From Octopus bimaculoides (lineage: Eukaryota), in assembly GCF_001194135.2 (NCBI RefSeq), contig NC_068981.1, forward strand, positions 40,753,884-40,817,883: 64,000 bases of DNA, read 5' to 3'. Below are positions 1-47,640 of this stretch, one piece after another (within the stretch, counting starts at the first letter, position 1; each line of letters opens with the position of its first letter). Below the pieces are notes generated by a model. The model was not told the DNA's origin. It ran no database searches and saw nothing but the letters and a program-made list of their open reading frames with translations. A program made the position numbers and the translations under genes.

Positions 1-245
1 CTCTTAATATTTCAGTACAAGATCTTAAATTAAGCGAGTTGGGGTTAACTTAAATAAAAGAAACTATATTGATGTAAATGGTTTCAAAATGTTGGTGGAA
101 AAGAGGATATAGATTTTCCAGTAAACCTAATTAAAGTTGTTCCCCTTCCTTCCCACCCTTTTTGGTTTTTTTTCATTTGTTTATTTGTTACAGAAAGTGT
201 CGCAATTTCGTTGTTCACACCTCCCATGGTACTTTGAATTTTCTT

Positions 246-279
<34 letters not shown>

Positions 280-512
280 GTCTAACCGCTTCATTGCTGT
301 ATTGTAGGTCTAGGTGTACGATTCTTTGTACAAGTATCACTGAGTGATGAAGTAGCGAAAGTAAAAGATAAATATATCAACCTTTGAAAATACCATAGAA
401 TTTGTTGTTCTTAAAAATGAGCAGTTCTAATCAAAATAGTTTTTGTAAATAAACATCGTTTTGTTTTTTATGTAGTAAATTTTAAATGCGAATTTTCGTT
501 TTGTTTTCAAAG

Positions 513-612
513 GCAAATCGTGAAGAGTTTGGCTGTGTTTGGCGGTGCTGTATACTTGGCACGAGTTATAAGTTCTTATGAAGCGTCTATCAAAGCAGAA
601 GCACTTGCATAA
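513..612 (+). CDS. Last coding exon of a candidate TOM6-like single-TM mitochondrial microprotein (QIVKSLAVFGGAVYLARVISSYEASIKAEALA*)
   Basis: ttgttttcaaag acceptor at 512, GTG|gtaagt donor after 626, TAA at 610-612. The peptide aligns ungapped to the recalled TOM6 TM segment NLILNLGLFAAGVWLAR. Upstream exon structure is ambiguous. Confidence 0.5.
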
Positions 613-1277
613 CTTATGCAATAGTGGTAAGTTTTTCAAAAGTACAGGTTTTTGTAAGCATAAGCTTTAATATTGGCGATCGTAAAGACTTTTTGAGGGT
701 TCAATCAAAAATTTAGTCATGATGTTGAGAGGGAAGCAAGGATAAGTTGAATCAACTATGAAGCGTTGGTTGATGAACTCACTTTATGAAATTTAAGTAA
801 TGCACCATATTAAGATAATCATTACCATTTTATGTTCACTTTCAATACAGGCACAGGTTCTATGACACATCATTATGGCCTAAGTTCTTATTTGGAGTTA
901 TTGCACCCCTAGACAGAGCAAAGGATGATGTCTTACACATTCCAGTTTTTAGCATGATTTCTATGGTTGGATGCCATTCCTAAGACCAACTACTTTACAG
1001 TGTATGCTGGATACATTTTATCTTTACTAGCCAGGTGTTTATGTCCTCAGAATAACGTCTGACTAGTCGATATAAAGAACCTCACCCATTATCGAAAACA
1101 AAAAAAAACAGCCTGCTGGATGTTAACAACTGTGTAGAATACGAAAAAAAAATTGCACAAATGAACCTGAGGGGGTGAGGAGAGGACTTTTGGAAAATTC
1201 ACACTGGAATTTTGAATTTGCGATTTTTGAAAAAAAAATGTTTGTAATCAGAATCTCTAGAGCTGGAAACGTAGGAT

Positions 1278-4182: not shown

Positions 4183-4290
4183 GAAAACCTGATGATGAAT
4201 AAGTTTACCAACTTATTTAATTCCTTTTCGTGTAAATATTTTAATTACTCCTGTCAGCAGTTTTCTATGCAATAAAAAAAAAATCTAATT
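4183..4290 (+). other. Exon-like segment with strong acceptor and AATAAA (4271-4276), probable terminal UTR exon
   Basis: ttttttgcttttctccctacag acceptor; a possible donor gtaaat at 4232 also exists. Confidence 0.4.
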
Positions 4291-4587
4291 ACACTTCTGT
4301 GGATTGGTTTCTTTATTTTTCAATCTTTCATGATTTGCAATACTTCATTGTGGCTCTGGAGTTTTGTAGATACTCAACAGTTGATTAAAACTGAAGTATT
4401 TCTTGGTCTTGTAGAGAGAGGTAAGTCTTTAGGATGCAGCTTTTATTCTTATGTATGTGATATCCAATCTGAATGTTATACCACTGCACAGAATGTTTTC
4501 TTAAAATTATCAAGAGTTACTTGATGCTCAGTTTGGAAAAATTAGTTCCACCTAATTTTTAGCTGTAATATGCACAAGCAAATACTA

Positions 4588-5679: not shown

Positions 5680-5881
5680 TGATCCTGGCTGGCTCCTGTG
5701 CTGGTGGCATGTAAAAAGCACCCATTACACTCTTGGAGTGGTTAGTGTTAGGAAGGGCATCCAGCTGTTGAAACATTGCCAGATCAGATTGGAGCATGGT
5801 GCAACCACTGGCTCTCCAGACCTCAGTCAAACTGTCCAACCCATGCTAGCATGAAAAACGGGCGTTAAACGATGATGATGA
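5680..5881 (+). mobile_element. Representative of an abundant (GAT)n-tailed SINE or LINE-3'-end family (other copies near 8780, 14160, 26590, 33830, 38130, 39510, 41090, 43220, 43560, 46330, 47195, 52810, 55200)
   Basis: Shared core aaaagcaccca.tacactct..gagtggtt.gc.ttaggaagggcatccagctgt..caacccatgccagcatggaa..gttaaacgatgatg. Some copies carry an internal ~40-bp minisatellite. Confidence 0.85.
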
Positions 5882-6679
5882 TATATATACGAAGAATCGC
5901 TGTTGGCTGAAAGAGTGCTAAATGATCCAGTTGAAATGCTGAACCACACAAGAATGAGAAGGGACTGCAAGTGGTGCTGTGCTGATAGACCTGTCCAAAT
6001 CCTACAAGTATGGAAAATGCAGCCTTGGTCTACGGACATAAAATGATAATGCAATTTTGTTGTATTAAATCTGAACTATCAATTTTGTATTTGCAGCATT
6101 GTATTCTCATTCTTTAACAAGGGAATCTCTGACTGTGCCAAATCCATTAACCTACCATCTTTAATTCTGTAAGGACATTCTGTTGATAATAGACTTTAAA
6201 AATAAAGATACATTTTTGTGATAAGAACACCAAAACTATCACTTTTTCAACCACTCTTTTTAGGCTGCAGCCATGCTGGAGCACGGACTTGAATTTTAAT
6301 TGAACAAATCAACACCAGTGCTTGATTTATTTTTTCTTTTTAACTGGGTACTTATTTTTTTTGGTCTCTTGCGATAGCACTAAGCTGCAGGGACATAAAC
6401 ATACCAACACTGGTTGTCAGGCATTGGTGAGTAGGAAAAGACACGAATATATACATACACTGGGTGCATAAGATATTTGAGAACAGATTTATCTGTTTTA
6501 AGTATAATGCACAGATTGCTATTTTGAAGTAATATTTCTTCCATTGCTAAAAACAGAAACACACACACATATATATAGATATATATGGGATAAATTATCC
6601 TGGCGGATACCGGCTTATTTCATAAACTGGTATAGATGCAGGCTATCCACAACAGCCCAATTACATAGTACTCTAGCAT

Positions 6680-7432: not shown

Positions 7433-8698
7433 TTGGGTCATCCCATAAATAATGCAGTTTTGTTTTGGGTTTTTTTTTCAAAATTACGATAAAGTTTTTT
7501 AATCTAAAATATACTCTCTTTCATCTACAATGCTCTTCCATCTAGTAGACTTCCAAGGCCCCTCTTCCAAAATTCACTTGTCCATGACAAAAAATACTCC
7601 TCCAGTACTGTTCTTACCTTGTCTACAGAATTCATATTTTTTCTGTCCAAATGATTTTGAAGACTGCAGAATAAATGATAATCAGATGGAACAATGTCCA
7701 GCAAATATGGTGGGTGGGGCATTGCTTCCCATTCAAACTACTCCAGCCATTGGAATGTCATCCTCACTGTATGTGGCTGAGCAGTATCCTGATGGAAGAA
7801 CACCTTTTGTCTTGAAACCAAAGATGGTTGTTTTTCTTCTAGCAATGACTTAAGCTGCTCAATCTGCTTGCAGTAGATCTCCTTTGTTATCATTTTGTTT
7901 GGGTTTAAAAGTTCAAAGTGGACTAACCCTTTCATATCCCACCAACCAGATAACAACACCTCACTTAGGTGAAGATCTTCTTTAGCCTGGGTTGCTCGTG
8001 TTTCTCCTTTCCCTACCCACTTCCTATGGCACTTGACATTTTTATAGAGAACCCATTTCTCATCACCAGTCACTATTCGGTCCAAAGCAAGTTCATTGGT
8101 GAGGCATGACAGCAAAGAAGAGCACATATTCACTCTTTGGAAAGTTTGTGAGGAACCTATTGATCCAATTTGATGACTTTTCTGATGGCACACAGGTGTT
8201 GATAAAGTGTCGAATGACCAAATCCAAGCTTCTCTGCTAGTTCCTCAACATTTATAATGGGATTTTTGTTCCACCAGGGTTTGTAGGATATCCTCATTGA
8301 GCTCTACAGATCTTCCAGGACAAAGTTCATCTTCTAGGCTGTAGTTTCCAGCTCAGAATTTCTGGAACCACCATTGACACTGGCTCACGCTTATTGTCCA
8401 TTCCCCATATACTGCATTAATATACCTCGCACTTTCCATTGCATTGTTGCCTTTATTGAACTCATAAAGCAAAATATGCAGAATATGCTCCTTTGACACC
8501 TCTGTTATAGCTTTGTAAAAATAACTGTTAAAATCGAACTGCACTCTTCAAAACTTGCGCTAAGGATAAGTACAAGGTAAAATTACTACCTGCGTTTATA
8601 GTAAGTTGATGCAGGTAGTTTATTTCACCCCCNNNNNNNNNNCCCAACTTTTAGATCATGCAATTGAAAAACACTGCATTATTATTGGGACGACCCAA
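7433..8698 (-). mobile_element. Near full-length mariner element with disrupted transposase
   Basis: TIRs plus TA TSD; RIVTGDEKW, GWWDMKG, HQDTAQPH (HDNARPH-like) and PYLLDIVPSDYHLF (YSPDLAPSDYHLF-like) split across frames; 10-nt gap inside. Confidence 0.93.
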
Positions 8699-8756: not shown

Positions 8757-9039
8757 TATGCATATATGTATATATATATATATAGGTATGTATGTATGAC
8801 ATGTAAAAAGCACCATTCAAGTGTGGTCGATGCCAGTGTCAGTGGCACATAAAAAGCACCCACTACACTCTCAGAGTGGTTGGCGTTAGGAAGGGCGTCT
8901 AGCTGTAGAAATCTTGCCAGAACAGATTGGAGCCTGGTACTGCCTCCTGGCTTGCCAGTCCTCAGTCAAACAGACCAACCCATGCCAGCATGGAAAGCAG
9001 ACATTAAACAATGTTGATGATGATGATGATGATGATATA

Positions 9040-9990
9040 CTTTGTTTCTTCACACAGAGAGGAATAAACTTTTCATTAATTCTTTCCTTTATAACTGCAA
9101 CAAGTTCTTTTAAACAGCCTGGCTGCAGCATTGTGCAGAATATGCCCTAGACATCCAACACCTTCCATCGATTCATTCATGCTTTCCTTGAATTTTGAAT
9201 AGACATTATTTGTGCCTATGCACAAACGTCCACCAAAATTAGTATTTGTGTTATCTCCACTAAAAGCTATATATTTCTTCACATCCTGTCCTAACTCAAT
9301 GAGGCTCTCTCTGCAGAAGGTTGCTACTGTTTCCAAGGTCTCATTTGGGAGGGATCTTACTCACAATAATTTTATCGGCAAACCCTTTTCATGTGAAAAA
9401 CATTGCACAATCAACAGGAAAATTTACTCGGCATTGTGGTTACTTGCATCTGTAGATATGCCTTAAGAAGAAGAGTTACTTATATTTTTAACAATCTCGG
9501 CAATAGTGTATGGAGTCACAGCATTTTTTATTATTGCAGCTCATTTAGTCCTAGCACTTGAAAATTTGCATGCAATTTTAGAATCAGGAAATACTGTTGG
9601 TGGTAGTACGTTTGTACAGTCATTTGAACTGAATGACTGATGATGACAGATGATATGAAATGCCATTGCAACTTCTGCAGCTATTATTTTACTTTCTTCA
9701 TCTGAGTTTTTCTTGATCAAGAAGTTTTTTTTTATATCTTACCAGCTTCTTTTGAAGTAGAGGCAATATTACTTTTGAGTTTTGCTGTTTCTATGTGTTG
9801 CTTGATATCAGACTTCTCACCATGTTCAATACTGAAAGTGCAATTACATACACTACAGTTTGCTTCAAAACAGCTACTGCCTTGTTTGATAAATGTCCAT
9901 TAGCTGCAATATTCATCTTGAAATTTACACTTACCTTTTGGCATATGGGGATGGATGGATTGGTTTTTCGGTTAGAAAGAAAGTGAGCCG
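9040..9990 (-). mobile_element. hAT-type transposase remnant
   Basis: Peptides FPDSKIACKFSSARTK, FSGDNTNTNFGG and GVGCLGHILHN (CxxH motif); stops and frameshifts present. Confidence 0.7.
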
Positions 9991-11171
9991 TGGCAAGTAG
10001 GAACACCGGGATCCAAACAAAAGCTCCCTAGGACGAAAGCCCCATAGTTAAAGTGTGAAATTGGAGAAAAGCCACCTCGGTTATATTTTTCAGTTATTTT
10101 TTCATTTTTTTCTTTTTTCTTTTTACTTGTTGCAGTCATTAGACTGTGACCATGCTGGGGCACCATCTTGAGGAACTTCTAGTCGAATGCATCAACCACA
10201 GAATTTTTTTTTATGATTTTCAACCAGCGCATGAGGTTAAGCCTAGAAGGTCTCCCCACATGCTAGAAATAACAGCCAAATCTCTTGAAAATTTTTATAA
10301 CCCCTCGGTTATATTTTTGGTTATTCTTCGATTTTTTTTAACTGCGGCCATACTGGGGCACGGCCTTGAATTTTTAGTCGAATGTATCGACCCCAGGATC
10401 TTTTTAAGGTGATTTTCGACCAGCACATGAAGTTAAGCCTAGAATGTCTCTCCACATGCTAGAAATAACAGCCAAATCTTAAAAACAATTTTTTTAATAA
10501 TTTCACGTAAACAAAAACGGAAAGCGCACTTGTAAAGAAAAAACTTTTATTTTCCAAAATTCCAATTTTTAAGTAAACAAAATATATTCAATAGAAAAAA
10601 AAAAAAAGAACAATAGAAAAGCAGGACACAAGACTCTTTACTACTCAATGTACATATTGTCTGAATTCTAACAGAAGGGAAAGCATTTACTTCAAGAAAT
10701 GTGTGGAAACATAAAAACGATAAGAAGTACGTTTGAACGATAAGCCTTCGGTGTCATAATTCTGATAGACAGGAGAAAGTTCAAAAGATCAGCTCATTCT
10801 CATTAATCTGTAAGTGCTGGGAGAAGAAAACAAAAGACTCAATTTAAATTTTAAAATGCTGATTTCTCTCTGACTAAAAATTCTTCAAGGTGGTGTCCCA
10901 GCACGGCCGCAGTCTATTAACTGCAACAAGTAAAATAAGTTTTAAATTCTGATGTCGATACGTTCAACAAAAAATTATTCAAGGCAGTGCCCCAGCATGG
11001 CCACAGTATAATGACTGAAACAAGTAAAAGGTGATAAAAATAAAAATAAAAATACCTGAAAAATATAACCGTGGGGCTTTTGTCCACTTTCTCACTTTAA
11101 CTATGGGGCTTTTGTCCGAGGGGCCTTTGTACGTGGGGTTTTTGTCCGTGGGAGCGTTTGTCCTACACTCA
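9990..11171. mobile_element. Foldback/MITE-like element with ~160-bp inverted arms
   Basis: 10030-10190 approximates the reverse complement of 10960-11118; GGACAAAAGCCCC-like motifs at both ends; internal direct duplication 10200-10290 / 10390-10480. Confidence 0.65.
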
Positions 11172-11384
11172 GTAACAACACAATTTGTTGACAGTATCAA
11201 GTTGCAAACACATCAGTTTTGTGTAAAGTGCTAGCATCACTAGTTTCCTCGTTACATTTAGGTTTTTTTCATTAAGAGAATATGAAAAAAGAAAGCACAA
11301 TTACTGACAACTAAAAACCGTAAGAAGGTAGAAAAAGTATTTTTTTATTACGAGATTTGAAAATGAACTAAATACAGGACATTT

Positions 11385-11473
11385 GGGGTGTCCCTGAAGG
11401 GTCAGTACGGGGCAGGGGACAAAATTATCAAATATGGGACATATCCCGTATATAAGGGACATCTGGCAACCCT
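11385..11473 (-). mobile_element. hAT-like terminus (AGGGTTGCCAGATGTCCC with GGGACA subterminal repeats)
   Basis: Typical hAT end sequence, oriented to match the transposase remnant at 9040-9990. Confidence 0.5.
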
Positions 11474-11999
11474 TGACAAGTCATTTGTCTGACTCTCTAC
11501 AGGGATTCTACAAGTAGACTGCAATTGTTCCTTACTTCTTCTTCTTTGTTTTCTCGGTACAGATTGAAACCACCCTATCTAGACATTTTATTTCTTTTCA
11601 TTAATTACTGTATTAAAATTATCTATTAACCAATCTTTGAAACACTCGCTTCAAGAGGGTCTTGTATATTATGGATCTTTATGTATGTTTCCCCGTTGTG
11701 CCAACAAATAAAATAAAGAATTATTCTTTTCTATTCTAGGCACAAGGCCCGAAATTTTGGGGGATTTAACCAGTCGATTAGATCGATTCCAGTACGCAAC
11801 TGGTACTTAATTTATCGACCCCGAAAAGATATGACTTCGATCAGGGAAATATTGATGTCTAGCAAAATTACCTTCGTGTGAAGAGTGCCAAATTAGTTAA
11901 CTCCCTTTCCTCGATAATTGTAAATATCTCCTGTAGCAGTTTAGAGTAATATATTAGCAAGTCAGGATATTCCTTCTGGGAAATTAATCCTCTACAAAA

Positions 12000-12700
12000 A
12001 GTAAAATAAAGAAGCTTACGGAAAAAATATAAACTTGGCAAAAGCCAACCTATGTTCCACAATAAGATATAAATGAAGAAAGCAGTCGACAGTTTTGATT
12101 AATGTGTTGATTTTGGACTTGTCAGATTTTTTTTTATTGAACCAGCGCTTAGAGACATCTAAACATGGCATCAACTGCAACGATGCTTTACCAGGAATTA
12201 GAGCAGGTAAGTGTTCAGTAAACAGTAATATAATGTTTATACGCAGCAAAACATTTTTGTTTGGCACTTACAAGATACTCGTTTTCTTTTTTTCCATTTA
12301 TATATTTGCATTATGTTAATGACATAAAATTTCATAGGGGTGTGGTCCATCATCCGAAACTGCCAAAACAGTCGAGGAGACTTGGGTAAGTTCAAATACA
12401 GTGAGGAGTGTAGAATCGTAACACTTCTTGCTTTCTTTTCTTCAGAGAAAGTTCTAAACCCCCGAATCATTTGGGTTTACATTCCTCCCGACATTTGAAC
12501 TTAGCTAACTTTTCTACTGACTAACTGTTGCCGAAGGAGACCTTCACTAGCGCCTCATCCTTAGACTCCTGATTTTCCCTTACTAAACATAATCTGTAGA
12601 GTAGAAGGAAATAAATAAATACGAAGCATAAATTAAGTTGTAAATTTTTATATCAATTCGAAAGCAAATATTGCCTTAGACTATATATATATTTATATCG
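12000..12700 (+). promoter_or_regulatory. CpG-enriched region around EXOC5 coding exon 1, probable promoter-proximal zone
   Basis: Non-repeat sequence with visibly more CpG dinucleotides than the CpG-poor introns (judged by eye, not computed). Confidence 0.35.
12165..12206 (+). CDS. EXOC5: EXOC5 coding exon 1 (MASTATMLYQELEQ)
   Basis: aaacATGg start context, GAGCAG|gtaagt donor, phase 0 into EPFN of exon 2; the start could alternatively be the ATG at 12183. Confidence 0.85.
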
Positions 12701-15700
12701 TTTGAACTGAGTCTGTATTTACTCATTCTGTAATTACTTTATTTATTATCCAAATGTATATCTTAACTTAAGTGATTACCGTTTTACAAAATTAAATTTT
12801 AAAAATTGGACAAAACAGAGAACACAATTGAAAAAATTAAAGAGAACGGAAAAAAAGAAACAAACCAAAACAATTCACCACCTAGGATTGAAATGTTGGG
12901 GGTACTGGGAAACGTCTCTAATGGCTATTAAGGCACGCTTGCAGTGTTGCCACAGGTGATGGTGAGGCTGATGCACTGGAGCAGCCAAGTGCCCTCACGA
13001 GCCTCACCACATACCTCTGCTGGGCGAGTTGCCAGTGAAGACAGGAATCTCGCAGTTAGTGGTCCAACCCCACCAAACGTCTCAAATGCTACATGATGGA
13101 AAATGTAGTTGGCTAACAGATCGCAGTATTTCAGGATTTTGTTCCACTCGGCCGCAAAAGCTGTGGATCTCGCTCTGACCGCAGCATTCAGGATGTGAGA
13201 AGAAGCAAAGGGGTCTCTAACTGTGACATCCCAGACAAGGCATCTACCTCGCAACAGTGAGGCCATCAGTTCTTTTCCCACCACATCTGGACAATCCAGA
13301 TGGTTCCAAGATGGAGGGAATGTTTGCCCGAGCCAAGCTCCTCTTGAGTATCAAGTTCAACTCCATATGACGTGCAAAGCAACCAGCATTCGGGTGGCAA
13401 GAAAGACCATGGAGGCCTGTGGAGTCGAGGAGCCTGCCGCAACAGCAGATCAAACCCTTGCATACATTAGCTCCCACTCTAAGGGCAATGGAGACACAAA
13501 GTTCGTTCAAGCTGAGTAGGCCACCAACATTAGCCACAGGGATGGCACCAATCCAGTCACCTGAGTACTTAACGCTAGTAGACAGTAATTGGCACCTTGA
13601 AAACTGGTCCGACTGGATAAAGAGGGAGTCGAACTATTATTTGTACTGAGAGATTTTGAGATAACAATTTCTACATTTTAGTGATAAAGGTGAATTGTTA
13701 AATTTCTAATTCAAAAGGCTACACCACATCTTAGTTGCTAACAGCTGAGAGATTTGCACCAAATACTGACTTTTTAATGCTCAAGAAAGAAAGTTTATAT
13801 TTGTGAAACAATTGTATAGGCCAGGAAGTTAGATGATTTTAAGTAGGAAGGCTGTCAAATCACAACCCACTTCAGGTAGATGGTCCTGCTTGATTTGTAG
13901 AAAAGGTGTGGGTAGAAACTCCATACAACGTACTTAGTGTAAGCTATGGACACACAAAAGGTCAGCAATATCAAAGGAAGGTTAACCGGGAATATAGTTT
14001 TTGCATGTGGCAGATGCAATGGAGCAATAAACACTGAAGATGTACAAAAAATATATTCTATCACATGCCAGGGAGAGAAACTAGGAGTAGTCAATAGCTT
14101 CCACTACCTAGATAACCAAGTCTGTAGCACCATCCGAATGTAAAAAGCAACAAACATGGCCAATGCCAGTACCCCCTGACTAGCTCTTGTGACAGTGGCA
14201 TGTAAAAAGCACCTTCTAAACGTGATCGATGCGAGGCCCGCCTGACTGGCTCCTGTGCCGGTGGCACGTATAAGGCACCCACTACACTCTCAGAGTGGTT
14301 AGCATTAGGAAGGGCATCCAGCTGTAAAAAACATTGCCAGATCAGATTGGCGCCTGGTGCAGCTGCTGGCTCTCCAGGCCTCAGTCAAACTGTCTAATCC
14401 ATGCCAGCATGGAAAATGGATGTTAAACGACGATGGTGATGAACATAGTTCACAAGATGGACAAGATGTATCTGAAAAAACAAATACTTCACATCAAATC
14501 ATGCTTACAAATTAAAAGAATGTGTTTCTGCTGTCAATAGACAAATAAAAGCAAGAGTACTGCTATGTCATATTGACAGAGATAACAACCAAATTTCCCA
14601 TAAATCACATCTTACCATCTTAAAAGATTAAATTTGATGATGTAGTACTACATACTCAGACCTGGTTGAAACCGAAACGGTAATGATTTTCGATTACAGG
14701 CCTTCTCATACAAAGCTGTACTATAGCTAAATAACAGCATAGTGTTATAGAATATATAATAAAAACTGATTAAATTGTAGCCTATTTGTTGTGTAAATAC
14801 TGATATTTAATATAGGAAGAATGCATGTAAAATAGTATGGAGAAACATATTTGATATAGAAATTGTGATCAAAGCAGAGACTGGTTTAGTTTGTGGCAAG
14901 GAAATGTTTTCATGAAATCAAACTTTTAAATTACCTTATTTTAACATATATAAGGAACCCCCTAATTTTGGGGGCTTAAAATTTGGGAAAAAGGTTTTGT
15001 AAGGGATTATCATTCAACCACAGTAGTGGTTGAGTATATTCTTAAGTCCACCATTTCGTCAATTGCAGCAGCTTCCAAGCTTCACCACTAATTTACTTCT
15101 CAACTAAATTGCAAGCTGTTAAGTTTTAAAGAGGACACCTCCTCAACTACACTTTGGCACAAATAGTTTGAGATTGGCATAAATAGTTTGGTTCAGTAGA
15201 AAAAAAAGTTACATCAAAATATCTGTGACCTCAAGGGGGTGGGGGGAGTAAGGCAGATATTCATCTTCAATTAACATAAATTTTAAATTAAAAGTATACC
15301 TTTCTTAGACTTAAATGATAGACAAATGCATGAGGAATTCAGAATTGCTAGTCGCATTGAACAAAAATTAGTAGAAAAAGAGTTATGAGGTAAAATGTTA
15401 CGAAATTTCAAGTAAGGGAGTAATGCTTAAGCAATAAGAATAAAGAATATATTTCTAAAATGAATGTTTTCTTTCTAAGGCGACGAACTGGCAGAAACAT
15501 TAGTGTGCTGGGTAAAATGCTTAACGATATTTCGTCTGTCTTTACGTTTTTGAGTTCAAATTTCGCCGAGGTCAACTTTGACGTACAGATTATTTAATTA
15601 ATTTTTTTTAACTAAACACTTTCAAACTTCCAATACTGGTAGAATGTGTCACATTGAACAGGGTTTACTCTTAACGTTTTTGAAAAAATTTTTGACTATG

Positions 15701-23200: not shown

Positions 23201-25928
23201 AATGTCAAATCTATATAACATTTGTGGTAGTGTAGATTAACCTATATTTTTAGATTTAACAAAACGACCTTTTCCTTATCTTGGTATTTTATTATCTATC
23301 ATTATTTCTTTCTTTTTTTTTTAATCATCTGATATTAATTTTTAGCAACAGAAGCAGTATTAGTACCAAAGACAATCTTTAAAGACAACTTAACATGGAT
23401 GTTTTGTTAGGACACTAAATACTACATTATTAGCCTTGCAAGAGCCTCTCATATAAGCACTCGGTGCATGAAAGCACACACACAAAACATAAGCAAGAAT
23501 CATCTGTTATGGATGCCAGAACTATCCAATATATACACACACCACACATACATTTACTGTAGTGGGATAGGTTTTACAAATCATGACATTTGCATATTTC
23601 TGGAGTAATTCTTTTTGCAGCTAGACATTCTTCTTACATCCTAAACACTCAACTCTAAAATTATTGTGAAACTTTCTGTCAGATATATGTTATACTGAGA
23701 CAGCTGTATGTTTAGCTAATGACCACAGTCCAATATCCCTAGTATTACAGTTTGAACTTATGAATATGAGGTTCAGTAAACCTTTTACGATACAGTTTTT
23801 TTTAAAATTTAATTGTTCATTTATTTTAATTAGTTGACCTAATTGACATTTCTCACTTGCATATCATATTTCACTCCCTCTCTCTCACTCACACACGCAC
23901 ATTGAGACCTAAGTGCAGTTTTTTGGAAGCTTGACCAGAATTAAGATTTCTCTCTTTTTTTTTTTTTTTTGGTGGAGGTCAGTTTCCATTTTTACTCCAT
24001 AGCCAAGGGAGGAAGGTCAGGATTCATGCACTCTTTATTTTTCAATGTTTCTGTGACTATTAGGTACAAAAGAGGAAATTATCCTCAAACTAAGCAATGG
24101 TTTAACACTCAGAATGCAGTCAACTGGAACAAATATTACAAAGTATCTTATCTGATATTCTAATAAATCTCTCACTCCACTGCCATATAGTTGTTTTAGC
24201 CTTTCTCTTTCCACCTCCTTTTCATCCCTCCATCTGGTTCTTAGTTTTTTTCTTCTCTTCCTGTATCTTTGTAATCTGTCTTTCTCTCCTCGTTGGTCTG
24301 CTCTTTGCCAGTGATTCTCCACTCCCTGTTGTTTCCAGTCCTAATCTTTTTCCTTCCCGATAGATTATATTTGCCAAGTTCTCAAGCTTTTGTTCATCAT
24401 CCCCTTTGAATTTGGTGGTCATTCTTGCTACCTCGTTGTCGTATTTCTTATAACTCGCTGCATCATTTTCCTTCGGTCACTTAATCTTTAGCTTCTTCAT
24501 GCTTATCTCAATGGATAGAGTTTATAAACTCTCCATGCAGCCTTCAAAAATGATAACCTCAACCCTACCAGCTCATAAAAACCCCGAAGAAGTTCTACCC
24601 CATATAGTAAGAATATTACTTTTTTCTTAGCATTTAACCATATTCTGTGCTATGGGATAGCACAGAAACATGTAGGTTTTTTTAAAATTCTTTTTGAGCT
24701 TTACAACTTATAATCAATTTATTTGTATTGTAATGTTTTTAAAAATTTTTCAACATTTTTTTAACATACAAATAAATTTTTCACACATCCAATTCTTTTC
24801 ATTTTCTCTCCTTCATTATATATATGTGTGTGTGTGTGTGATGAATCTTGCAGGCATGAAGTGGATTCGATCCACCATAGCCAAATTTAAATTAACAGTT
24901 CAACAGAACTTTTCTCACAGTAAAACAATAGTTTTTCTGTGACAGCAGTTTTACATTTGCCAGATTGCCTTAGCTAGGCCAAAATAATGTCTTCACCATT
25001 TGACCCTTCTAACTTCTCCTAGACCACCAAAAGCTAGAATTAAGATAACAAGTACCACCAACTAAATCCATTGTTCTCAACGATATGTCTATCCTTCTGG
25101 ATAGTTATAAAAGCAAGAACCCCAAGCAAAGATCAGTTAGTCACTTGGTGACGACTGAGTTAGTCGGCTCGTGACAGCTCAATCAGTTAGTTAATGAATG
25201 ACAAACTCGAGTCAGAGACAGCTACCATCAGGTAGGGAGCAGAACGCTAGAATCATGATCCGAAGCAAAGTAGCTACTAAAGACTTGTCAAATGGAGAAT
25301 TGAAATTTACTGTCAGCAGCTATGAGACCCAACTTCCCACACTCTCTCACTTTCACTAACTCACTTTGTCTTCTCTGCACATTACCATATCTCTCTCTAT
25401 GGTTTACTACTACAATACAAGCACACAGGCCGAAATTAACTTTTTTACTTCACACACTCTAGAATTTTATCACCTCCCCATTGAGGCAAGGTATATTCAA
25501 TGTAGCGGTAAATAAATATTTTCTTCACAACTTCAATCACTGTTCTTTCATCTTTATATAATAGCAATCAATGGAGAACTAATCCTTACAAACAGATTAC
25601 ATCTATCCTGCTGTGTATCAACTATCGTTTATCATATTATTGCTTACTAGGCAGCGAGCTGGCAGAAACGTTAGCATGCCGGGCGAAATGCTTAGCGGTA
25701 TTTCGTCTGCCGCTACGTTCTGAGTTCAAATTCCGCCGAGGTCAACTTTGCCTATCATCCTTTCGGGGTCGATTAAATAAGTACCAGTTACTCACTGGGG
25801 TCGATATAATCGACTTAATCCGTTTGTCTGTCCTTGTTTGTCCCCTCTGTGTGTAGCCCCTTGTGGGCAGTAAAAAAAATAAAAATAAAAATATTATTGC
25901 TTACTAATTAATTTCATCCATTACACAC

Positions 25929-25962
<34 letters not shown>

Positions 25963-27717
25963 GCACACATCAGGATTCTTTCAGTTTCCATCTACCAAAT
26001 CCACTCACAAGGTTTTGGATGGTCCAAGGCTATACTAGAAGACATTTGCCCAGGGTCAGTAATGTTACTATGCCTAGAAAAAGAATATTTACATAAAATT
26101 CGTTATCAGTAACAGAAGCAGTAGTATTCCAAGGTACCATTCTGTACATCTTTTTAGCTCTACATGTCTATGTGAGAAGCTTCTTCAAGATGAATACCGC
26201 AGTAGTGTGGGTCTTCTAAACTATATCCATGTTAAGTAAGATTTACACAAAATCCTCCACTTGACATTTTTGCCAAAAGAATTTCATTATATAATTGAAT
26301 TTTCTAACATTTCAATCCATTTTTACTTATTTTGATTCAAGTTAATGATTTCTTATTTATATTTCAGGGATGCTTCACATCAGATGATATCTTTGATGAG
26401 ATTCTGCCACTGTGTACCAAAACAAATGAATTAATCAACAGCGTTTTTGCCAATCCTGAAATTGTAATGGGGAAATTAGTACAAAAAATCTATCTTGGTA
26501 AACTTCAGGTAATGTAAATAATCTCCTTAATATATAAAGCAGCTACATTTTTATTATATCGTCATAATCATTTTCATTTTTTGTTCACTCTCCATGCTGG
26601 AATGGGTTGGACTTTTGTCATGCCTGTACCAGCAAAAGAAAAACATGTAAAATGATGCAGACATTAAATGCTAGCATGGAAAGCGGACGGTAAATGATGA
26701 TCATGATGATGTGTATGTATCATCATCATCATTTAACGTCCATTGTCCATGCTGGCATGGGCTGGACAGTATGACCGGGCTGGCATGCTGAAAAGCTGCA
26801 CCAGACCCCATTCTGATTTGGCATAGTTTTCTACGGCTGGATGCCCTTCCTAACTCCAACCACTCCGAGAGTGTAATGAGTGCTTTTACATGCTACCGGC
26901 ACTGGTGCCATTTGCATGACACCAGTATCTACCATGACTTCAATTTTGCTCAACTAAATGGGTCTTCTTCTCAAGCACAACATAAGGCCAAATGTCTTGG
27001 TCATTGCCTCTGTGAGGCCCAACACTCGAAAGAAACTCAGCCAGAATATACTAGAATCAATTTAATCTTTTTCATAAAAAGATTGGCTACATACTTACTC
27101 AAGAGAAATCAATAATATATTTCATGCTTATTCTAGAACAATTGAGAGATGATGTACTTGGCTATTATCAAAAAACTTTTCAAAAACACACTTAAGATTT
27201 TAAAAATTACAACTTAAAAACAAAATTTCTTGTAGGTTATCTTTTTAATTAACTATATTTTTGTTAACTTTCCAGGAAACTATTTCTAAAAAGTTGGACA
27301 GCCAGACTGACCCTGAGCAGTATTTAACTAATTTATATGATCTTTATACAAGGTAATCTTATTCATTATTTTACCCTTCTTTTCTTCAAAATAATAATTT
27401 TCTGGGCTTAATTTTTGGTATATTTATATCCACACTTTATTTTGATTGATTTCATCTCCACTCATCATCTTTGAATGTATATATAACCACTGTTTTGATT
27501 TGATCTGGTAACCTTTATTTTTGAAATAAATGTAATAATGTTATTCTACATTATAAACATTGAATTGAAACCCAAAAGAAACCCAGCTAACTGACAGGGC
27601 ACAAATTATATATCTAATCTTTTTAGGGCAACAACATTACATTAGAGAACATCTACCATTCTGTATCAAATTTTATTTTATAATTTATTTTTGCTTTTTT
27701 AACTGTACTTTCAGTAA

Positions 27718-27804
<87 letters not shown>

Positions 27805-30800
27805 TTCATTAAAAACATAGTTAATTCCTATGAATAATAATATTTTCATTGACTAAGCTGACGAAACTATATGTAACTACCTGTCAACAAATCGCAAGGG
27901 CATCTATTTACAATTAGTGTTTAAAAGGTCAACTCTTGATGCCAAGCACTGATAGCGTGAAAAACACATTCTTTTTAGTTTTAAACGAAAGCTAGTACTG
28001 TTTATAAAAAAGATACTTCCAGCAATAATTAGTATGTAACACAAAGTGGATAACTAATTTTCACTTAGTTATAAGGAAGCTGCTGTAAAGCAAATCTTAT
28101 ACCAAAAGTTCTGTGTATCTGAATAAAACAATTTTTCTACTACTCTTATTTTTGCTATTTTAAATTGATTCTTTTGTTTGTTATTTTTCAGGACAGCTAA
28201 GTTATCAAATGACCTATCCAAGTTCAAATTGAGTAATGACAGTTCTTTTCTAAATAAACAGAAAAAAAGTATTTTTCACAAACATCTTGAAGCATATATA
28301 AGGTAAGGCTTTAGAATTATTATTTAGTTCTCTCTATTTATCCTTCCCTACCATTATTATTATTATTGTTGAATTAGATGATATGCTAATCATAGTTGGG
28401 GTTTCTAATGTTATTGCCTCATGATTTTAATATTTATTTTCCCATGGGTTGGTTGGGTCTGCAGCACAACATATCATTAGAGTTAATCCATCACTCAGTT
28501 TAACAGCACTTCCTGGTCATGGATTCTTCTCTGTCGCAAGCATTTGGGGCTAGCATTCTGCTTTAAGTACAACTTCCTCCTCTCTTCTCACCATTTTCAA
28601 AGACCCTGGAAAGATCATAAGCTCAGCCCTTTCTCTTGTAACTAGGTCATAAAAATTATTTTTTAAATCCTGCATCATTATCTCATTGGGTTCATACATC
28701 CTGAGATCTGTTTCACCATTTCCAGCGTTTTCCTCAGTTTTTAGATAATTGTTTAAACTAAATATTCAAACATAAATATAACTTCACAATACACAAGATC
28801 AAATTGATGTAATGATTTTTTTATTTTTATTTTAGCCATGAAATTAAATTTCTGCATGAACGCAGTTCATTATTATTGCAAAGATATTATAATAGTAAAA
28901 ACCATCAAAAAAAGAAAATTCAGTCTGGTGGGTAAGTTTTCCATTAATTGTTACAGGATTTTATCTAAGTTTACATTTGTCCTTGTATAGACTGTGCAGC
29001 TTTCTTTCCATTGATTTCTAACACTGGTACAAAGCAAGAAGTTTTGGGAGAGTTTTGGGAAGTATCTTTTTTATAACTGATACTTATTTGTTGGTCCCCA
29101 CAAGGATGAAAGGTAAGGTCAGCCTTGGTATGATTTGAGCTAAACAAAGGAATGTAACTAAATGTCACAAGGCATTTAACCCAACTCATCACTGCTTGTG
29201 CTTTTGTTTATTAGATAGTCTGAGAAGAGAAGTGATCATTGCTTTATCAATTCCTCAAAGACTAAAAGAGGAGTAAGAAACTGAGATTAACACTATTAGT
29301 ATTTAGTGCCCTCAATTGGCACTCATCTTTTTCTTGCTTATTATGCACAGAAAGAGCATAAATGTGAAAATACACCCTCCCAGATGTGTGAGCAGTTCTC
29401 ACTCTTATAGAAACATCCTTATGTTCTGAAGAGGATTCCTGAAACTTCATCATTATTATCGCTCTTGGGACACTGAAGTTTGAATCAAGCATGTTGTGGT
29501 ACTTCAACCACTCATCAGTAGGTTGCAATGAAATTTTAAAAAGAAATATGCATTACACAAATACATATTATGGAGGCATTGTTTTACAGCCAAATGCCCT
29601 TCCTTTCTTGTCACTAACTCATTCCTGTTTTTCAAGTAACAGAGCTTTCACTCTTCTTTGAAAGTAGAGATACCAGATGATTTGTTGTTAACAACTAACT
29701 TTCAAAAAACGCCAACTATAGCTCAGCAGTTTTCCATGCAGGGCACAGAATGCAAAGATTCACACTTAGCAAACACACGCAGACACATATATATATATAT
29801 ATATACAAATGGCTTTGTAAAGTTTCCATCTATCAAAGGCATTGATTGACCCTGGGATAGTGTAGAAAACACTTTGAACTGCTTAAATACACTGCCATGC
29901 CTGCCCCTTCAAGTATATGTGTTTGTCTTTGTGTGTATGCATGCCCACACACACACATACACACTCACTCACTCACTCACTCACTCCACAAAAACAAAAT
30001 ATACTCAGGAAAGATGTGGTTAACAACCAGATTTCTTTCTTTTTTTTTTTTTTTTGCATTTGCCTGTAAATATAGACATTTGTTTTGTAGTAAATATATT
30101 TTTAGCATCAATTGTGATGTTGCTCTATTTTTCCCTTCTAGCTTCCGGAGAGAATTTCAGGCTGTGATTAATACTGTAAATATCAATATTGGGCCAACCA
30201 TTGAAAATTACGGAGGTGAAATATTTCTCTCACAAGAATTAGCAATGAATATTTTACAGGAAACAAAGTTAGCTTTTAAGCGCTGCAAAGTTGTAAGTAC
30301 ATTTTTACATTAATTAATTTTGATTTATCTTTTACTAGTTTCATTCATTAGACTGCAACCATGCAGGGACACCACCTTGAAGAATTTTAGTCAGGCAAAT
30401 CAACTTTAGTACTTATTTCTTTTTTGAAGCCTTGCTACTAATTCTGTTGATCTCTTTTGCTAAACATCTTGGTTACGGTGACATAAACACACTGACACCA
30501 GCTGTCAAGTGTTGGTGAGGGACATACAGACACAAAGGGAGAAGGCAGTCGATGGTGTGTATTTTGGAGAGATTAGAACGAATGGTGGCGTGCATAAGGT
30601 GGTAGGATGTAGTACAGAGTATGGGTAGGATGGTTGAAGCAGAGTGGAGAGTGGGGTGGAAATGGAGGCAGAAACTTCTAGGGATGAGGAGGTGATGAAG
30701 GTAGCAACTGAGAAAGGAAAGGTGACTGCAGAAGCATGTTGTTTTGAAAATTAGTAGGGAAAGGTTAATAGAAGGTTGAAAGCAGTGGAAAGGTTTTTTT

Positions 30801-31957
30801 TAGTTGGAGGAGGAAAGGTTTGTAATCGGGTATGATTGAAAAACGAGAAAAGAGAGAAAGGAGAAAAAAAAGAAAAAAGAGTGGGGAGAGAGAAAGGCAA
30901 TAAAGACGTGATGAGGAAAAATTCAAAAGGCATGAGGAGAAAAAATGCAAATGGCGTCAGGAGAAAAAAATACAAGAGGTGGGAGAAGAAAAAAAAGGAG
31001 AGAAAGAAGGAAGAAGAGAAGACAAAAGGGAAAAAGAAAGGGAGGGAGAGAGAGGCAAGGTAACAAGTGCAGATTGAGAGAAACGACAATAGGAAAAAGC
31101 AGAAAGTACAAAAAAGTTTAGAAAAGTTCAAAAGGTTCAAACGTCATGGTGTATTGGAGTGATTTCCCATCAAAGGAAGACTCCAGTGTAATCCATGGGT
31201 AGGAGAGGTGCAGCTGAAATGTAGGAGTCCAGGTGTAGGAGAGTAGAAGAGAATCCAGGTAGAATAGTCTAAGAAAAGTTCGAAGTGGAGGTGGAGACAG
31301 GATAAAACTGGTGCGACCACAACCACATATCCTCCTTCCAGATTCCAGAAAGACAATTCATCACATCCTTGGCCAGTCACGTGTGGCGCCTCAAAGATGA
31401 AGGGACCCCATATGTTATCAAGTGAAGAACCTTAGAGCAGCTGGAGCCCTACATAAATCCCTTGTTTCCCCTCTTTTGACACACAAAAAAAAAAAGATTG
31501 TCTAAGGGTGATAACCTGTCCTCACTAACCCCGGACTATTTATTCTTTGATGATTAACTGGCCAAATGACTGTAATGGATACCTGCCTCCCAGAGGTTGA
31601 GAGTTGCATTTGTCTTCAGCTTTAGAGTCTGATGAGACGTTCATGAGGCTAAAGCCTTTGTGGATACAAACCTATTGGTCACTCTGTGACTGGACATAGA
31701 ATTACTTATAAATATATATATGTATATATATGGGAGAATTTACGAAAAAAAATAACAGCAGACGAGGACAGGTGGTGTAAACAACAAAAAGATGTATTAG
31801 TTTAACATATAAATATTCATCTTTGGCAAGCAGTATTTTTATTCTTCTTTTATTCAAATATTTAATATTATACCTATTAAGGTAGAAGTCTTGCTAACCA
31901 CCTCATTATTACTGTTTTTAACAGTAATAATGCTTTCATATAGTTGCTTTTTTATAT

Positions 31958-31999
<42 letters not shown>

Positions 32000-34900
32000 T
32001 TGGAATACTTACAAGAATTGTTGGATCAATTATCAGTTAGGAGTAGATTTTAGTTTTCTGCTAGTTTCAACTGATGCAAGTTATGCCCTTCTCCAATTCA
32101 TTGTTATTGTTGTTATTGTTCCCAGTCAGTCCTAATTGAGTAATTCTGCAAAGAAAGGTATCCCAGCCTTGACCATTCCAATTTTTATTCAGTCATACGA
32201 TATCTAATAGTACATTATCCAATGTGCTCTTCCTTTTTTAAGACAGTGTAATTGTCGAAAGATTTGGCTACTGTTTTCTTGCAGATCAAGTAATGCATAA
32301 AGATTCCCTTATTGCATTATTCCCAACTTGGTAGTATTTTAAGATATGTAAGTGTTGGGTTGGACCCTTGTCTGCTCATACTCCAAAAGTCAGTTTTTCT
32401 CTTTAAAATTTTATTTTTGCATATTGTTTTGTTGTTTATTTATGTGTGCATGTGCGTAAGGGAATATGCTTATGTTTCATAATGTTGATATATTTACTTT
32501 CAGATTTCCAGTGCATCAGACCTACCTTCAAATGCTGTCAAAATTCTAGAAACACTCATCCAATATCTTGTAATGGAACATATAGATTATGCAGTTGAAT
32601 TAGGTCTACAAGGTAATGTTTTAAAGAAATTTCACCTAAAGGAAATTTTAAAGGAATTTCACTTACAAGAAATCATAACACAAACAGATTCCATGTGATA
32701 AATTCTAAAAACTCATCAGTAGTAAAATCGTTTACATTATATAATTCCAGAAACTTTGTTACACCTTCATTTATTAAGACAGGTAGATACAGAAAATAAT
32801 CTTTTCTACTCTAGGCACAAGGCCCAAAATTTTGGCGGGGTGGTGGATAGTTGAGTAGATTGATCCCAGTACACAACTGGTACTTAATTTAACTTAATTT
32901 ATTCACCCCAAAAGAATGAAAGGCTAAGTCAACCTTGGCGGAATTTGAACTCAGAACGTAAAGACAGATGAAATACCGCTAAGCATTCGCCTGTCATGTT
33001 AACGTTTCTTATTTCTTTATTGCCCACAAGGGGCTAAACATAGAGGGGACAAACAAGGACAGACAAAGGGATTAAGTTGATTATGTTGACTCCAGTGCGT
33101 AACTGGTACTTAATTTATCAACCCCAAAAGGATGAAAGGCAAAGTTGACCTCGGCGGAATTTGAATTCAGAACGTAGCAGCAGACAAAATACTGCTAAGC
33201 ATTCGCCTGGCATGCTAACATTTCTGCCAGCTCACCACCTTAGTTACAGAAAATAATAAAGAAAGAAAGCGTAAGGAATCATACAGCAGAAAAGCAACAT
33301 TTTTCTTATCTCCTTGAAAAAAAAAATTAGTATCTAAGATGGCCAAATGCTAAGTATAAATTTGTTAACTATCTCATCATCATCATCATTGTCGCGGACG
33401 TTAAACAACAACGATGATGATGATGAGATAGTTAACGAATTAATATATTTCTTTTGGTGTTCTTCACTCTTTCTTTATAAATTTTTTTCATTTACACCTG
33501 TTATTTATCAGTCTGTCTGTCCATCCATTCTTTGACTTGTATGTTGTCATAAACACAGGCATGGCTGTGTAGTAAAGAAGCTTACTTTGCAACCAGATGG
33601 TTTTGGGTTCAGTTCCATTGTGCAGCACCTTGAGCAAGTGTCATCTAATATTGCACCAAGCCAACCAATACCTTGTGAGCAAATTTGGTAGATGGAAACT
33701 GTGTGGAATTCCATCATATATATATATATGAACCTGGTGCAGCCCCTGGCCTTATCAGCCCTCATCAAACCATCCAACCCATGCCAACATGGAAAACAGA
33801 CATTAAATGATGATGATGGTATCATCATCATCCTTTAACATCTGTTTTCCATGCTGGAATGGGTTGGACAGTTTGACCAGAGCTGGCAAATTGGGAAGCT
33901 ACACCAGATTTTTGTCTGATTTGGCTGGATGCCCTTCCTAATGCCAACCACTTTACAGTGTGTGCTGTGTGGTTTTTAGCATGCCACTGGCACAAGTACT
34001 TTTTACTTGAATGTGTGTTTTTCTTTTGTCTCCCTCCCACCACTTAACAGGTGTTGGTTTGTTTAGCAAAAGAGACCAATAAAATATGTACCACACTTAA
34101 AAAAAACATAACTACTAGGATCAATTTGTTCTATTAAATCTTTTAAGGCTGTGCTCCAGTATGGCCACAGTCCAATGACTGAAACAAATAAAAGATATAA
34201 GTTCACATTAAGGCTTAACAACTTTGTGTTATTCTGTATTTTTCTAGCTAGAATTTTACATCCATCATTCACTGTTTTTATTCTCCCATTTCTATTATCT
34301 CATCTGACATTACATACAAAGTAGCCTAAATTTGTACTTAACCATTTTGGTAAGTACCATAGAATGGTAGTTGGTGACACAGAGCTTGAGTATGCTACCG
34401 AGTTTAAATTTCCAGGTGGAATTCATTTGCCTCAGGCCTAAACATGCCACTGTCTGGTCTTTAAATTTTTTGTAAATTCACATTATTATGAGCAAGTGTG
34501 ACTATATGGCTGAGAAGTTTGCTTCCCAACCACATGTGTTTGGGTTCAGTTTTACTGCATGACACCATAGGCAAGCGTCTCCTATTATTGCTCCAAGCCA
34601 ATCAATGCCTTGTGAGTAGATTTGGTTCACAGAAGCTAAAAGAAGCTCCTCATGCATGTGTGTGTATATAATTGTGTGTGTGTGTGTCCTTGTCTTGATA
34701 GTGCATAGCAGTTATAAATGATTGTCACTATCATACAAGTAGTGTCATTCATTTCCAATATTCTGTAAAAATGTGTCTGATCATGGGAAAATATTAATCT
34801 TGCTTGGTGACAGGAAAGTCATCAGACTGTAGAAAATTTGCTATAGTAAACTCTGTCCAAACCTTGCAGGCATAGAAAAATGTATGTTGAAATAATAATA

Positions 34901-46184: not shown

Positions 46185-47640
46185 GAACGTGTGTGTGTGT
46201 ATGTGTAATATTTCATATACATATATGATGAATTTATATAAACATATGTTATGTATGTATAGATAGATAGATAAGACAGACAGATAGATGCCAGCATGGA
46301 AGGCAGATGTTAGGTGATGATGATGAGGTTATATATGTATCATCATCATCATCATCATCGTTTAACGTCCGCTTTCCATGCTAGCATGGGTTGGACGATT
46401 TGACTGAGGATTGGTGAAACCAGATGGCTACACCAGGCTCCAATCTGATTTGGCAGAGTTTCTACAGCTGGATGCCCTTCCTAATGCCAACCACTCAGAG
46501 AGTGTAGTGGGTGCTTTTATGTGTCACCCGCACGAAGGCCAGTCAGGCAGTACTGGCAACGGCCACGCTCAAAATGGTGCATTTTATGTGCCACCCGCAC
46601 AAGAGCCAGTCCAGGGGCACTGGCAACGATCTCACTCGAAGATCCCACGAAGGCCAGCCAGGCGGTACTGGCAACGATCACGCTCAAAATGGNNNNNNNN
46701 NNNNNNNNNNNNNNNNNNNNNNNNNNNNNNNNNNNNNNNNNNNNNNNNNNNNNNNNNNNNNNNNNNNNNNNNNNNNNNNNNNNNNNNNNNNNNNNNNNNN
46801 NNNNNNNNNNNNNNNNNNNNNNNNNNNNNNNNNNNNNNNNNNNNNNNNNNNNNNNNNNNNNNNNNNNNNNNNNNNNNNNNNNNNNNNNNNNNNNNNNNNN
46901 NNNNNNNNNNNNNNNNNNNNNNNNNNNNNNNNNNNNNNNNNNNNNNNNNNNNNNNNNNNNNNNNNNNNNNNNNNNNNNNNNNNNNNNNNNNNNNNNNNNN
47001 NNNNNNNNNNNNNNNNNNNNNNNNNNNNNNNNNNNNNNNNNNNNNNNNNNNNNNNNNNNNNNNNNNNNNNNNNNNNNNNNNNNNNNNNNNNNNNNNNNNN
47101 NNNNNNNNNNNNNNNNNNNNNNNNNNNNNNNNNNNNNNNNNNNNNNNNNNNNNNNNNNNNNNNNNNNNNNNNNNNNNNNNNNNNNNNNNNNNNGTTATAT
47201 ATGTATCATCATCATCATCATCATCGTTTAACGTCCGCTTTCCATGCTAGCATGGGTTGGACGATTTGACTGAGGATTGGTGAAACCAGATGGCTACACC
47301 AGGCTCCAATCTGATTTGGCAGAGTTTCTACAGCTGGATGCCCTTCCTAATGCCAACCACTCAGAGAGTGTAGTGGGTGCTTTTATGTGTCACCCGCACG
47401 AAGGCCAGTCAGGCAGTACTGGCAACGGCCACGCTCAAAATGGTGCATTTTATGTGCCACCCGCACAAGAGCCAGTCCAGGGGCACTGGCAACGATCTCG
47501 CTCGAAAATCCTACGACGGCCCCGCACAAGAGCCAGTTCAGGGGCACTGGCAATGATCTCGCTCGAAAAATTTCATGTGTCACCCACACAAGAGCCTGTC
47601 ACCCATACATATATATGTGTGTGTGTGTGTGTGTATGTTA

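Follow-up and report, generated by a model that had tools for sequence, protein, structure and literature searches.

A window of 64 000 nucleotides of Octopus bimaculoides DNA very probably contains, at positions 513–612, the second coding exon, which is also the last, of the TOM6 orthologue in octopus (the protein is named TOMM6 in vertebrates and Tom6 in Drosophila). TOM6 is a tiny helper subunit of the mitochondrial protein-import pore; every animal should have it, and the result is biologically expected. The gene adds a new and so far unannotated member to a known family, and encodes an expected housekeeping component. The initial annotation of this DNA had proposed a TOM6-like microprotein gene here, and the profile searches, structurally proven Drosophila homologue, interface residues and intron position presented below support that proposal. 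The gene is not new to annotation, as the encoded protein is already predicted in two octopus genomes, where it has no name. The assignment would provide a functional name for an octopus microprotein currently labelled 'uncharacterized' or 'hypothetical', and would complete the inventory of cephalopod TOM core subunits.

The window is AT-rich eukaryotic DNA (35% G+C) interrupted by N gaps, and searches of it for tRNA genes and Rfam families found none. As summarized in Table 1, it appears to contain just the last 512 nt of intron 1 and the terminal coding exon. The sequence context of the acceptor is the same in O. vulgaris. The 32 codons at positions 514–609, read directly, translate to QIVKSLAVFGGAVYLARVISSYEASIKAEALA (the codon of Lys44 occupies positions 523–525), and these residues are predicted to form the membrane helix and C-terminal tail of TOM6. 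The exon had initially been drawn from 513 to 626; its acceptor, frame and stop codon are confirmed, with coding sequence up to 612, and its end at 626/627 remains putative.

Table 1. Predicted features of the TOM6 locus in the window (a slash marks a splice junction)
Feature	Position	Strand	Remarks
3΄ part of phase-2 intron 1, predicted TOM6 gene	1–512	+	Colinear with O. vulgaris intron (L001 11223–11713), ~93% identity
(CA)n microsatellite, intronic	~259–280		Inside the intron 1 part (1–512)
Polypyrimidine tract and AG acceptor (511–512) of the terminal coding exon	491–512	+	aattttcgttttgttttcaaag/G
Exon 2, coding part, residues 41–72	513–609	+	G513 completes the split Trp40 codon (TG/G)
Stop codon TAA	610–612	+	Read directly
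Start of 3΄ UTR (613–626), then donor-like GTAAGT (627–632; putative donor)	613–632	+	Kept in O. vulgaris

We found that QIVKSLAVFGGAVYLARVISSYEASIKAEALA is 100% identical to the C-terminus (residues 41–72) of the 72-aa O. bimaculoides protein A0A0L8IED1, which is labelled 'uncharacterized' in UniProt and has the full sequence MDFSNMDFGSMPSSKKIEGPPTPTGVVEFMKSFWTDPLKW-QIVKSLAVFGGAVYLARVISSYEASIKAEALA. This protein was the single match when a 44-aa version of the peptide was searched against 5.8 billion proteins. A word-indexed search for homologues, whether started from the peptide or from the full protein, recovered nothing beyond this O. bimaculoides entry, and an exact look-up of the protein in assemblies found no record. 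The C-terminal half of the protein yields few tryptic peptides.

The 40-residue N-terminus of A0A0L8IED1 is absent from every frame of the window, and we located its exon by comparison with O. vulgaris. The O. vulgaris counterpart is CAI9714854.1, and window positions 1–1197 are colinear with positions 11223–12400 of its genomic locus (L001), with 90.6% identity. In L001, exon 1 (from the ATG to ...AAATG/gtatgt) lies at ~10001–10119 and exon 2 begins at 11714; because the intervening intron is ~1.6 kb long, exon 1 of the window's gene should fall before window position 1. We estimate that this exon (MDFSN...PLKW) ends ~1.1 kb and begins ~1.2 kb upstream of that position, and synteny with O. 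vulgaris suggests that the gene is continuous from exon 1 to exon 2 in the window's assembly. The upstream exon end reads ...TTGAAATG, and the N-terminal half of the protein includes IEGPPTPTGVVEFMK. The CpG-rich zone that had been described as typical of a gene 5΄ end can be understood from the same comparison. The CpG o/e value is indeed raised in positions 1–1000 (0.61, compared with 0.30 window-wide), but the island itself is outside the window. In O. vulgaris, a CpG island (o/e 1.2–1.5) covers ~2.5 kb of the sequence preceding exon 1 and fades across the intron and exon 2, and the zone in the window would thus be the trailing edge of a promoter island.

Assembled reads from a second cephalopod show the junction of exon 1 to exon 2 in use. 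Contig L002 (Logan assembly, run SRR8281680) contains an uninterrupted ORF reading ...CCTTTCAAATG GCAGTTGGTAAAGAGC... (..PFKW QLVKS..), with the junction at ...AAATG/GCAGTTGGTAAAGAGC, whereas contig L003 (run ERR14857108) has the same upstream sequence and then continues as ...CCTTTCAAATG/gtaggtttaag. Because L002 is continuous and L003 runs into gtaggt, L002 is spliced and L003 is unspliced or genomic. The junction separates the second and third bases of the Trp codon, and it fits the window acceptor ag/G CAA ATC GTG AAG; this splice evidence comes from the second cephalopod, not from the species of the window.

These observations bear on the N-terminus given in the initial annotation, which had either joined an exon at 194–228 (ag/AAAGTG...CCATG/gt) directly to 513 or had begun a 40-aa protein at the ATG at 226–228 and continued it via a micro-exon at 314–333 to 513. 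The required AG and GT dinucleotides and compatible phases are present at these coordinates. However, in the annotated octopus proteins and the second-cephalopod transcript ...P[LF]KW is followed immediately by Q[IL]VKS, the known protein contains neither the 194–228 exon nor the micro-exon, and neither version has the conserved F-x-K-S-x-[YW]-x-D-P motif. In addition, 194–228 is less conserved than the neighbouring intron: 31 of 35 nt are identical to O. vulgaris, and each of the four changes is non-synonymous when read in the frame that had been proposed (KVSQFRCSHLPW versus KVLKFRCSRFPW). At 314–333, 3 of 20 nt differ (17/20 identical). We give almost no credence to either of these models, we assign both pieces to intron 1, and we retain the junction of exon 2 to an upstream exon ending in Trp40.

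We compared nucleotide conservation in the coding exon with that of its surroundings. Positions 513–612 are identical to O. vulgaris at 99 of 100 nt, the single change being synonymous, compared with ~93% identity (~91–95%) in the flanking non-coding DNA. The 32 codons were also compared with those of a more distant relative, the 67-aa protein P0014 encoded on contig L002 of the second cephalopod, which gave dN = 0.21, dS = 1.63 and dN/dS of ~0.13. These substitution patterns indicate that the exon at 513–612 is under purifying selection and that 194–228 and 314–333 are without coding constraint.

The family of the protein came to light only when 1.84 billion representative proteins were searched exhaustively with HMMER, and a later profile search extended it. 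It consists of 50–70-aa proteins from cephalopods, a gastropod, a bivalve, an annelid, mites, a horseshoe crab and Drosophila, including members from Nucella, Dreissena, Ridgeia, Tachypleus, several mites and many Drosophila species, all of which are labelled hypothetical or uncharacterized. Two long hits of the HMMER search were set aside as irrelevant: P0002, a repetitive 1166-aa ENA prediction, and P0003, a bacterial peptidoglycan-binding protein matched via a low-complexity or repeat part. The family motif is F-x-K-S-L-Y-x-D-P-F-x-W-x-L-V-K-S-x-x-x-F-x-x-G-V-Y-L-A-R, and 25 invertebrate sequences show no variation at Trp40, Lys44, Ser45 and Phe49 (numbered as in octopus). The octopus and Tachypleus proteins share 56% identity over 34 residues (E = 1e-12).

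We then compared a seven-member profile, consisting of the octopus protein and its mollusc and arthropod relatives, with all PDB sequences. The best match was Drosophila Tom6 (9etm_G, 'Mitochondrial import receptor subunit TOM6'; E = 3.1e-9), and the second was human TOM6 (7ck6_E; E = 0.0034). Three matches had E < 1, and all of them carry TOM6 (Drosophila, human and a human TOM fusion construct). Alignment of the invertebrate family with human TOMM6 using hhalign gave a probability of 94.7%, and the value was 97.9% (E = 4e-13) for 25 invertebrate versus 12 vertebrate sequences whose alignments had been built separately. Moreover, bridging sequences such as FVKSLYGDEFRWSLVKSVGFFCFGVALAREFKGVDLMAPQQPM unite the octopus-type N-terminal motif with the vertebrate-type DLMAPQP tail.

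Searches with single sequences gave negative results. A Pfam scan of three versions of the peptide and of the full octopus protein found no family, including TOM6p, at E ≤ 10; a phmmer search of the PDB with this protein found no TOM6, returning only a spurious designed repeat protein (E = 0.52); and BLASTP of the octopus protein against human TOMM6 (a sequence identical to PDB 7ck6_E and a full TOM6p match) produced no alignment. The membership of the octopus protein in TOM6 accordingly rests on profile and transitive evidence. A match to a TOM6 profile had been named at the outset as a test of the gene, and the answer depends on the profile: the window peptide and the full protein fail Pfam TOM6p (PF15184), and the family profile succeeds. 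The gathering score of TOM6p is 27 bits, which is passed by the invertebrate members from Tachypleus (28.7 bits), P0045 (34 bits), P0075 (27.4 bits) and P0095 (28.2 bits). However, the model is narrow: Drosophila Tom6, which has been proven by cryoEM, scores 13.8 bits and is below this cutoff; failure to match TOM6p is therefore not disqualifying.

The position of the intron provides evidence of a different kind. Junctions were read from the genomic loci of primate TOMM6, the Tachypleus gene (horseshoe crab), the Dreissena gene (bivalve) and O. vulgaris. Every species examined has a single coding intron in phase 2, at the codon aligned to octopus Trp40 and just before the membrane helix. Exon 1 ends in AAA TG/gtatga in Tachypleus, AGA TG/gtgtgt in Dreissena and CGG AG/gtaacc in primate TOMM6, and exon 2 starts with ag/G CAG CTT, ag/G TCT CTG and ag/G AAC TTG, respectively; the split codon is TG/G (Trp) in O. 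vulgaris, Dreissena and Tachypleus, and AG/G (Arg43) in the primate. The acceptor in the window, ag/G CAA ATC, agrees with this arrangement. A common intron position and phase in so tiny a gene gives good support for orthology.

It could be argued that the exon belongs to some other family of small tail-anchored proteins and that its likeness to TOM6 is compositional only, consisting of a hydrophobic helix followed by LAR. Short membrane helices often yield spurious similarity, and the negative comparisons of single sequences with human TOM6 and Pfam TOM6p point in the same direction. However, the similarity reaches a non-membrane segment, FxKSxYxDPFxW, that is common to the structurally proven Drosophila Tom6, and the profile matches in the PDB below E = 1 all carry TOM6 sequence. 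Intermediates that combine the octopus-type motif with a DLMAPQP tail pass the Pfam threshold, and the intron position and phase are common to primate TOMM6. We consider membership in another family very unlikely, and we treat the protein below as TOM6.

Drosophila melanogaster Tom6 (52 aa; PDB 9ETM chain G; UniProt name GEO13367p1) is the closest structurally characterized match in the profile search, with 32% identity to the octopus protein over 28 residues. The two have in common the pattern V-[RK]-S-[IF]-[YW]-x-[ND]-x-[FL]-x-W-x-[LI]-V-K-S-...-F-...-L-A-[RK], both are small and tail-anchored (the octopus protein by prediction), and both are missed by Pfam TOM6p. In the alignment, the lipid-contacting residues Tyr15, Trp21 and Lys25 of the Drosophila protein correspond to octopus Trp34, Trp40 and Lys44. 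However, the N-terminus of the octopus protein is disordered and ~20 residues longer, and its tail is rich in Ala, Glu and Ser (SSYEASIKAEALA), compared with GVELMPSLGPA in the fly.

Human TOMM6 (74 aa; PDB 7CK6 and 7CP9; Pfam PF15184 TOM6p) is similar in length to the octopus protein. The membrane helices match without gaps (QIVKSLAVFGGAVYLAR in octopus, NLILNLGLFAAGVWLAR in human), exactly as had first been reported for this exon, and in both proteins the helix is preceded by a W/F-[LM]-[RK]-x-x-Y/W segment. In other respects the two differ, and their pairwise similarity is not significant. Vertebrate TOMM6 has a 5-residue insertion (RFATD) before the helix, it has Arg-Arg compared with the invariant Trp and VKS motif of protostomes, and its tail reads D-I-D-L-M-A-P-Q-P-G-V, which the octopus protein lacks. 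Fungal Tom6 (Pfam PF17112) showed no direct similarity to octopus TOM6 in our comparisons, and its N-terminal region is unrelated; the literature assigns it the same role and topology within the TOM core complex (PMC9052162). One invertebrate member of the family, P0091, passes the fungal Tom6 model with 21.2 bits (cutoff 18.8).

The C-terminal tail varies among the members in a more general manner. The motif D-[IL]-D-L-M-A-P-x-P is kept in many arthropod members and in all 12 vertebrate sequences retrieved, whereas the octopus tail (VISSYEASIKAEALA) lacks it. Tails rich in Ala and Glu and without this motif are general among the molluscan members, and DLMAPxP is also degenerate in Drosophila Tom6 (VELMPSLGPA).

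We next considered the predicted structure. The hydropathy maximum of the octopus protein is at residues 41–60, and an AlphaFold model based on a 30-sequence alignment (mean pLDDT 73) has a block-mean pLDDT of 93–94 over the same residues. In this model, residues 1–23 are disordered, and a helix at 24–35 is followed by a break at 36, adjoining Pro37, and a second helix at 37–71. A Foldseek search of the model against the PDB returned no match, as expected for a single helix. Tom6 has been described as one kinked helix whose membrane segment lies towards the C-terminus, and as binding strands β13–15 of Tom40 and contacting Tom22 (PMC9052162), and the helix–break–helix arrangement of the model fits this description. 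A protein of 72 aa with a single predicted membrane helix in its C-terminal half and a kinked shape thus agrees with TOM6 in size (~50–80 aa) and topology.

Published work also suggests what the octopus protein might do. Tom6 stabilizes the Tom40–Tom22 core and joins an intermediate of SAM-bound Tom40 and Tom5 during assembly (PMC9052162). Structure 9ETM shows the Drosophila TOM core complex ex vivo, as solved by cryoEM; Tom6 co-purified with Tom40, was identified by MS and was modelled over residues 7–48, and its Tyr15, Trp21 and Lys25 hold a phospholipid at the Tom40–Tom6 interface near the cytosolic face (PMC11707698). By homology with these proteins, localization of the octopus protein in the mitochondrial outer membrane, its binding to Tom40 and its function may be proposed as follows. 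Exon 1 would encode the disordered N-terminus and a short amphipathic helix ending in FMKSFWTDPLKW, and exon 2, beyond the phase-2 intron that splits the Trp40 codon, would supply the membrane helix QIVKSLAVFGGAVYLARVI and a short tail. The 72-residue tail-anchored protein would be inserted post-translationally into the mitochondrial outer membrane, as homology with the human and Drosophila complexes suggests, and its kinked helix would pack on the outside of the Tom40 β-barrel at strands β13–15, as in the solved complexes. There, an aromatic residue together with Trp40 and Lys44 could hold a phospholipid at the Tom40–Tom6 interface, and the subunit would stabilize the Tom40–Tom22 core and its assembly.

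We further analyzed the 3΄ end of the gene. The O. vulgaris model includes downstream exons, and CAI9714854.1 represents a 104-aa isoform. If this were the true product, the window's gene would use an internal donor at 584/585 (GC/GTCTAT) followed by exons at ~2772–2820, 4183–4231 and ~4337–4363. Splice signals at these downstream exons are good in both species. However, the donor at 584/585 is weak, and the third acceptor is CAG in O. vulgaris compared with CAA in the window. When the two octopus species are compared, dN and dS are about equal in the first piece of the extension, and dN is about half of dS in the second, values that are based on very few sites. Furthermore, the short C-terminus is conserved, ...ASIKAEALA before the stop codon corresponding to ...ATIKAEGLT before that of the second cephalopod, and no other family member has such an extension. 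Near-neutral change, the lost third acceptor and the conserved short C-terminus suggest that the extension represents non-coding 3΄-UTR exons or a prediction artefact; we judge it highly improbable that the 104-aa form is the true product, and the 72-aa protein ending at 612 is preferred.

A strong donor-like site, the putative donor in Table 1, lies 14 nt past the stop codon, and in the second cephalopod a strong donor is found directly at the stop codon. Neither AATAAA nor ATTAAA occurs between position 613 and the N gap at 1278. Given the downstream exons of the O. vulgaris model, a 3΄-UTR intron may follow position 626.

Two broader readings can be suggested, and taken jointly we hold them as tentative and somewhat unlikely. 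In the first, protostome TOM6 would form a coherent and readily recognizable subfamily (FxKSLYxDPFxWxLVKS) that curated models miss almost entirely, leaving TOM6 silently unannotated across invertebrates, and in molluscs the DLMAPxP tail would have been replaced by an Ala/Glu-rich helix. If this is the case, the mollusc tail might alter contacts on that side of the TOM complex. In the second, the strong donor near the stop codon would mark a conserved regulatory 3΄-UTR intron, which would then regulate a housekeeping mRNA. With regard to annotation, Pfam TOM6p misses most protostome TOM6, including the Drosophila protein of the cryoEM structure, and a profile from the alignment built here would close this gap. 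By extension, dozens of unnamed mollusc, annelid, chelicerate and insect proteins would receive names.

A strong donor-like motif was found at or just past the TOM6 stop codon in both cephalopods. In the spliced transcript contig of the second cephalopod (L002), it lies directly at the stop codon (TAA/GTAAGG, positions 439–450) and is left unspliced, as the contig sequence continues through it, and in the window (610–632) TAA is followed by 14 nt and then GTAAGT. Three exon-like pieces with good splice signals lie downstream of TOM6 (see the table), and the 104-aa O. vulgaris model (CAI9714854.1) joins them to TOM6 via a weak internal donor (584/585). A comparison of the two octopus species revealed neutral-looking substitutions in these pieces, and the acceptor of the third reads CAA in the window, compared with CAG in O. 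vulgaris. These pieces are probably 3΄-UTR or otherwise non-coding exons, or a prediction artefact.

Features in the window and upstream of the TOM6 start codon
Feature	Position	Strand	Remarks
Exon-like pieces	2772–2820; 4183–4231; about 4337–4363		splice signals good
Interspersed repeat, ~200 bp	5684–5887; 8837–9028; 14183–14442		
Mariner/Tc1-type transposase remnant	7738–8193	–	Pfam PF01359 Transposase_1, E 3.6e-22; 151-codon ORF
ORF pair	46411–46692; 47277–47699		first 73 residues the same (MVKPDGYTRLQSDLAEFLQLDALPNANH...)
CGGAAGTTG	L001 (O. vulgaris locus) about 9955–9965; L002 about 183–192; L003 (unspliced or genomic counterpart of L002) about 517–526		outside window

In O. vulgaris, as in the second cephalopod, the TOM6 start codon is preceded at a distance of approximately 35–45 nt by the sequence CGGAAGTTG, which we take to be similar to an ETS/GABP (NRF-2) site. 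Nuclear genes that encode mitochondrial proteins often have such sites in their promoters.

Most protostome TOM6 proteins in the family alignment (A4) were missed by the Pfam model TOM6p (PF15184); for example, Drosophila Tom6, which is proven by cryoEM, scored 13.8 bits, whereas the cutoff is 27. Each of the invertebrate members that we found is named only as hypothetical or uncharacterized.

Elsewhere in the window, each copy of the SINE-like interspersed repeat had at least four matches, with 80–88% identity and on both strands, within the O. vulgaris locus (26 kb), and ORFs at 12928–13537 on the minus strand look like candidate retroelement remnants. An N gap (46693–47193, 501 N) separates the two members of the ORF pair, neither of which had a Pfam match; their repeated start reflects a duplication in tandem or, alternatively, an artefact of the assembly. 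With respect to composition, the CpG observed/expected ratio was about 0.7 at 10001–13000 and 25001–26000, compared with 0.3 window-wide. Positions 30001–32000 were strongly skewed towards purines (GC skew +0.27, AT skew +0.11), and a minus-strand ORF rich in Phe, Ser and Leu (30751–31140) arises from low-complexity sequence.
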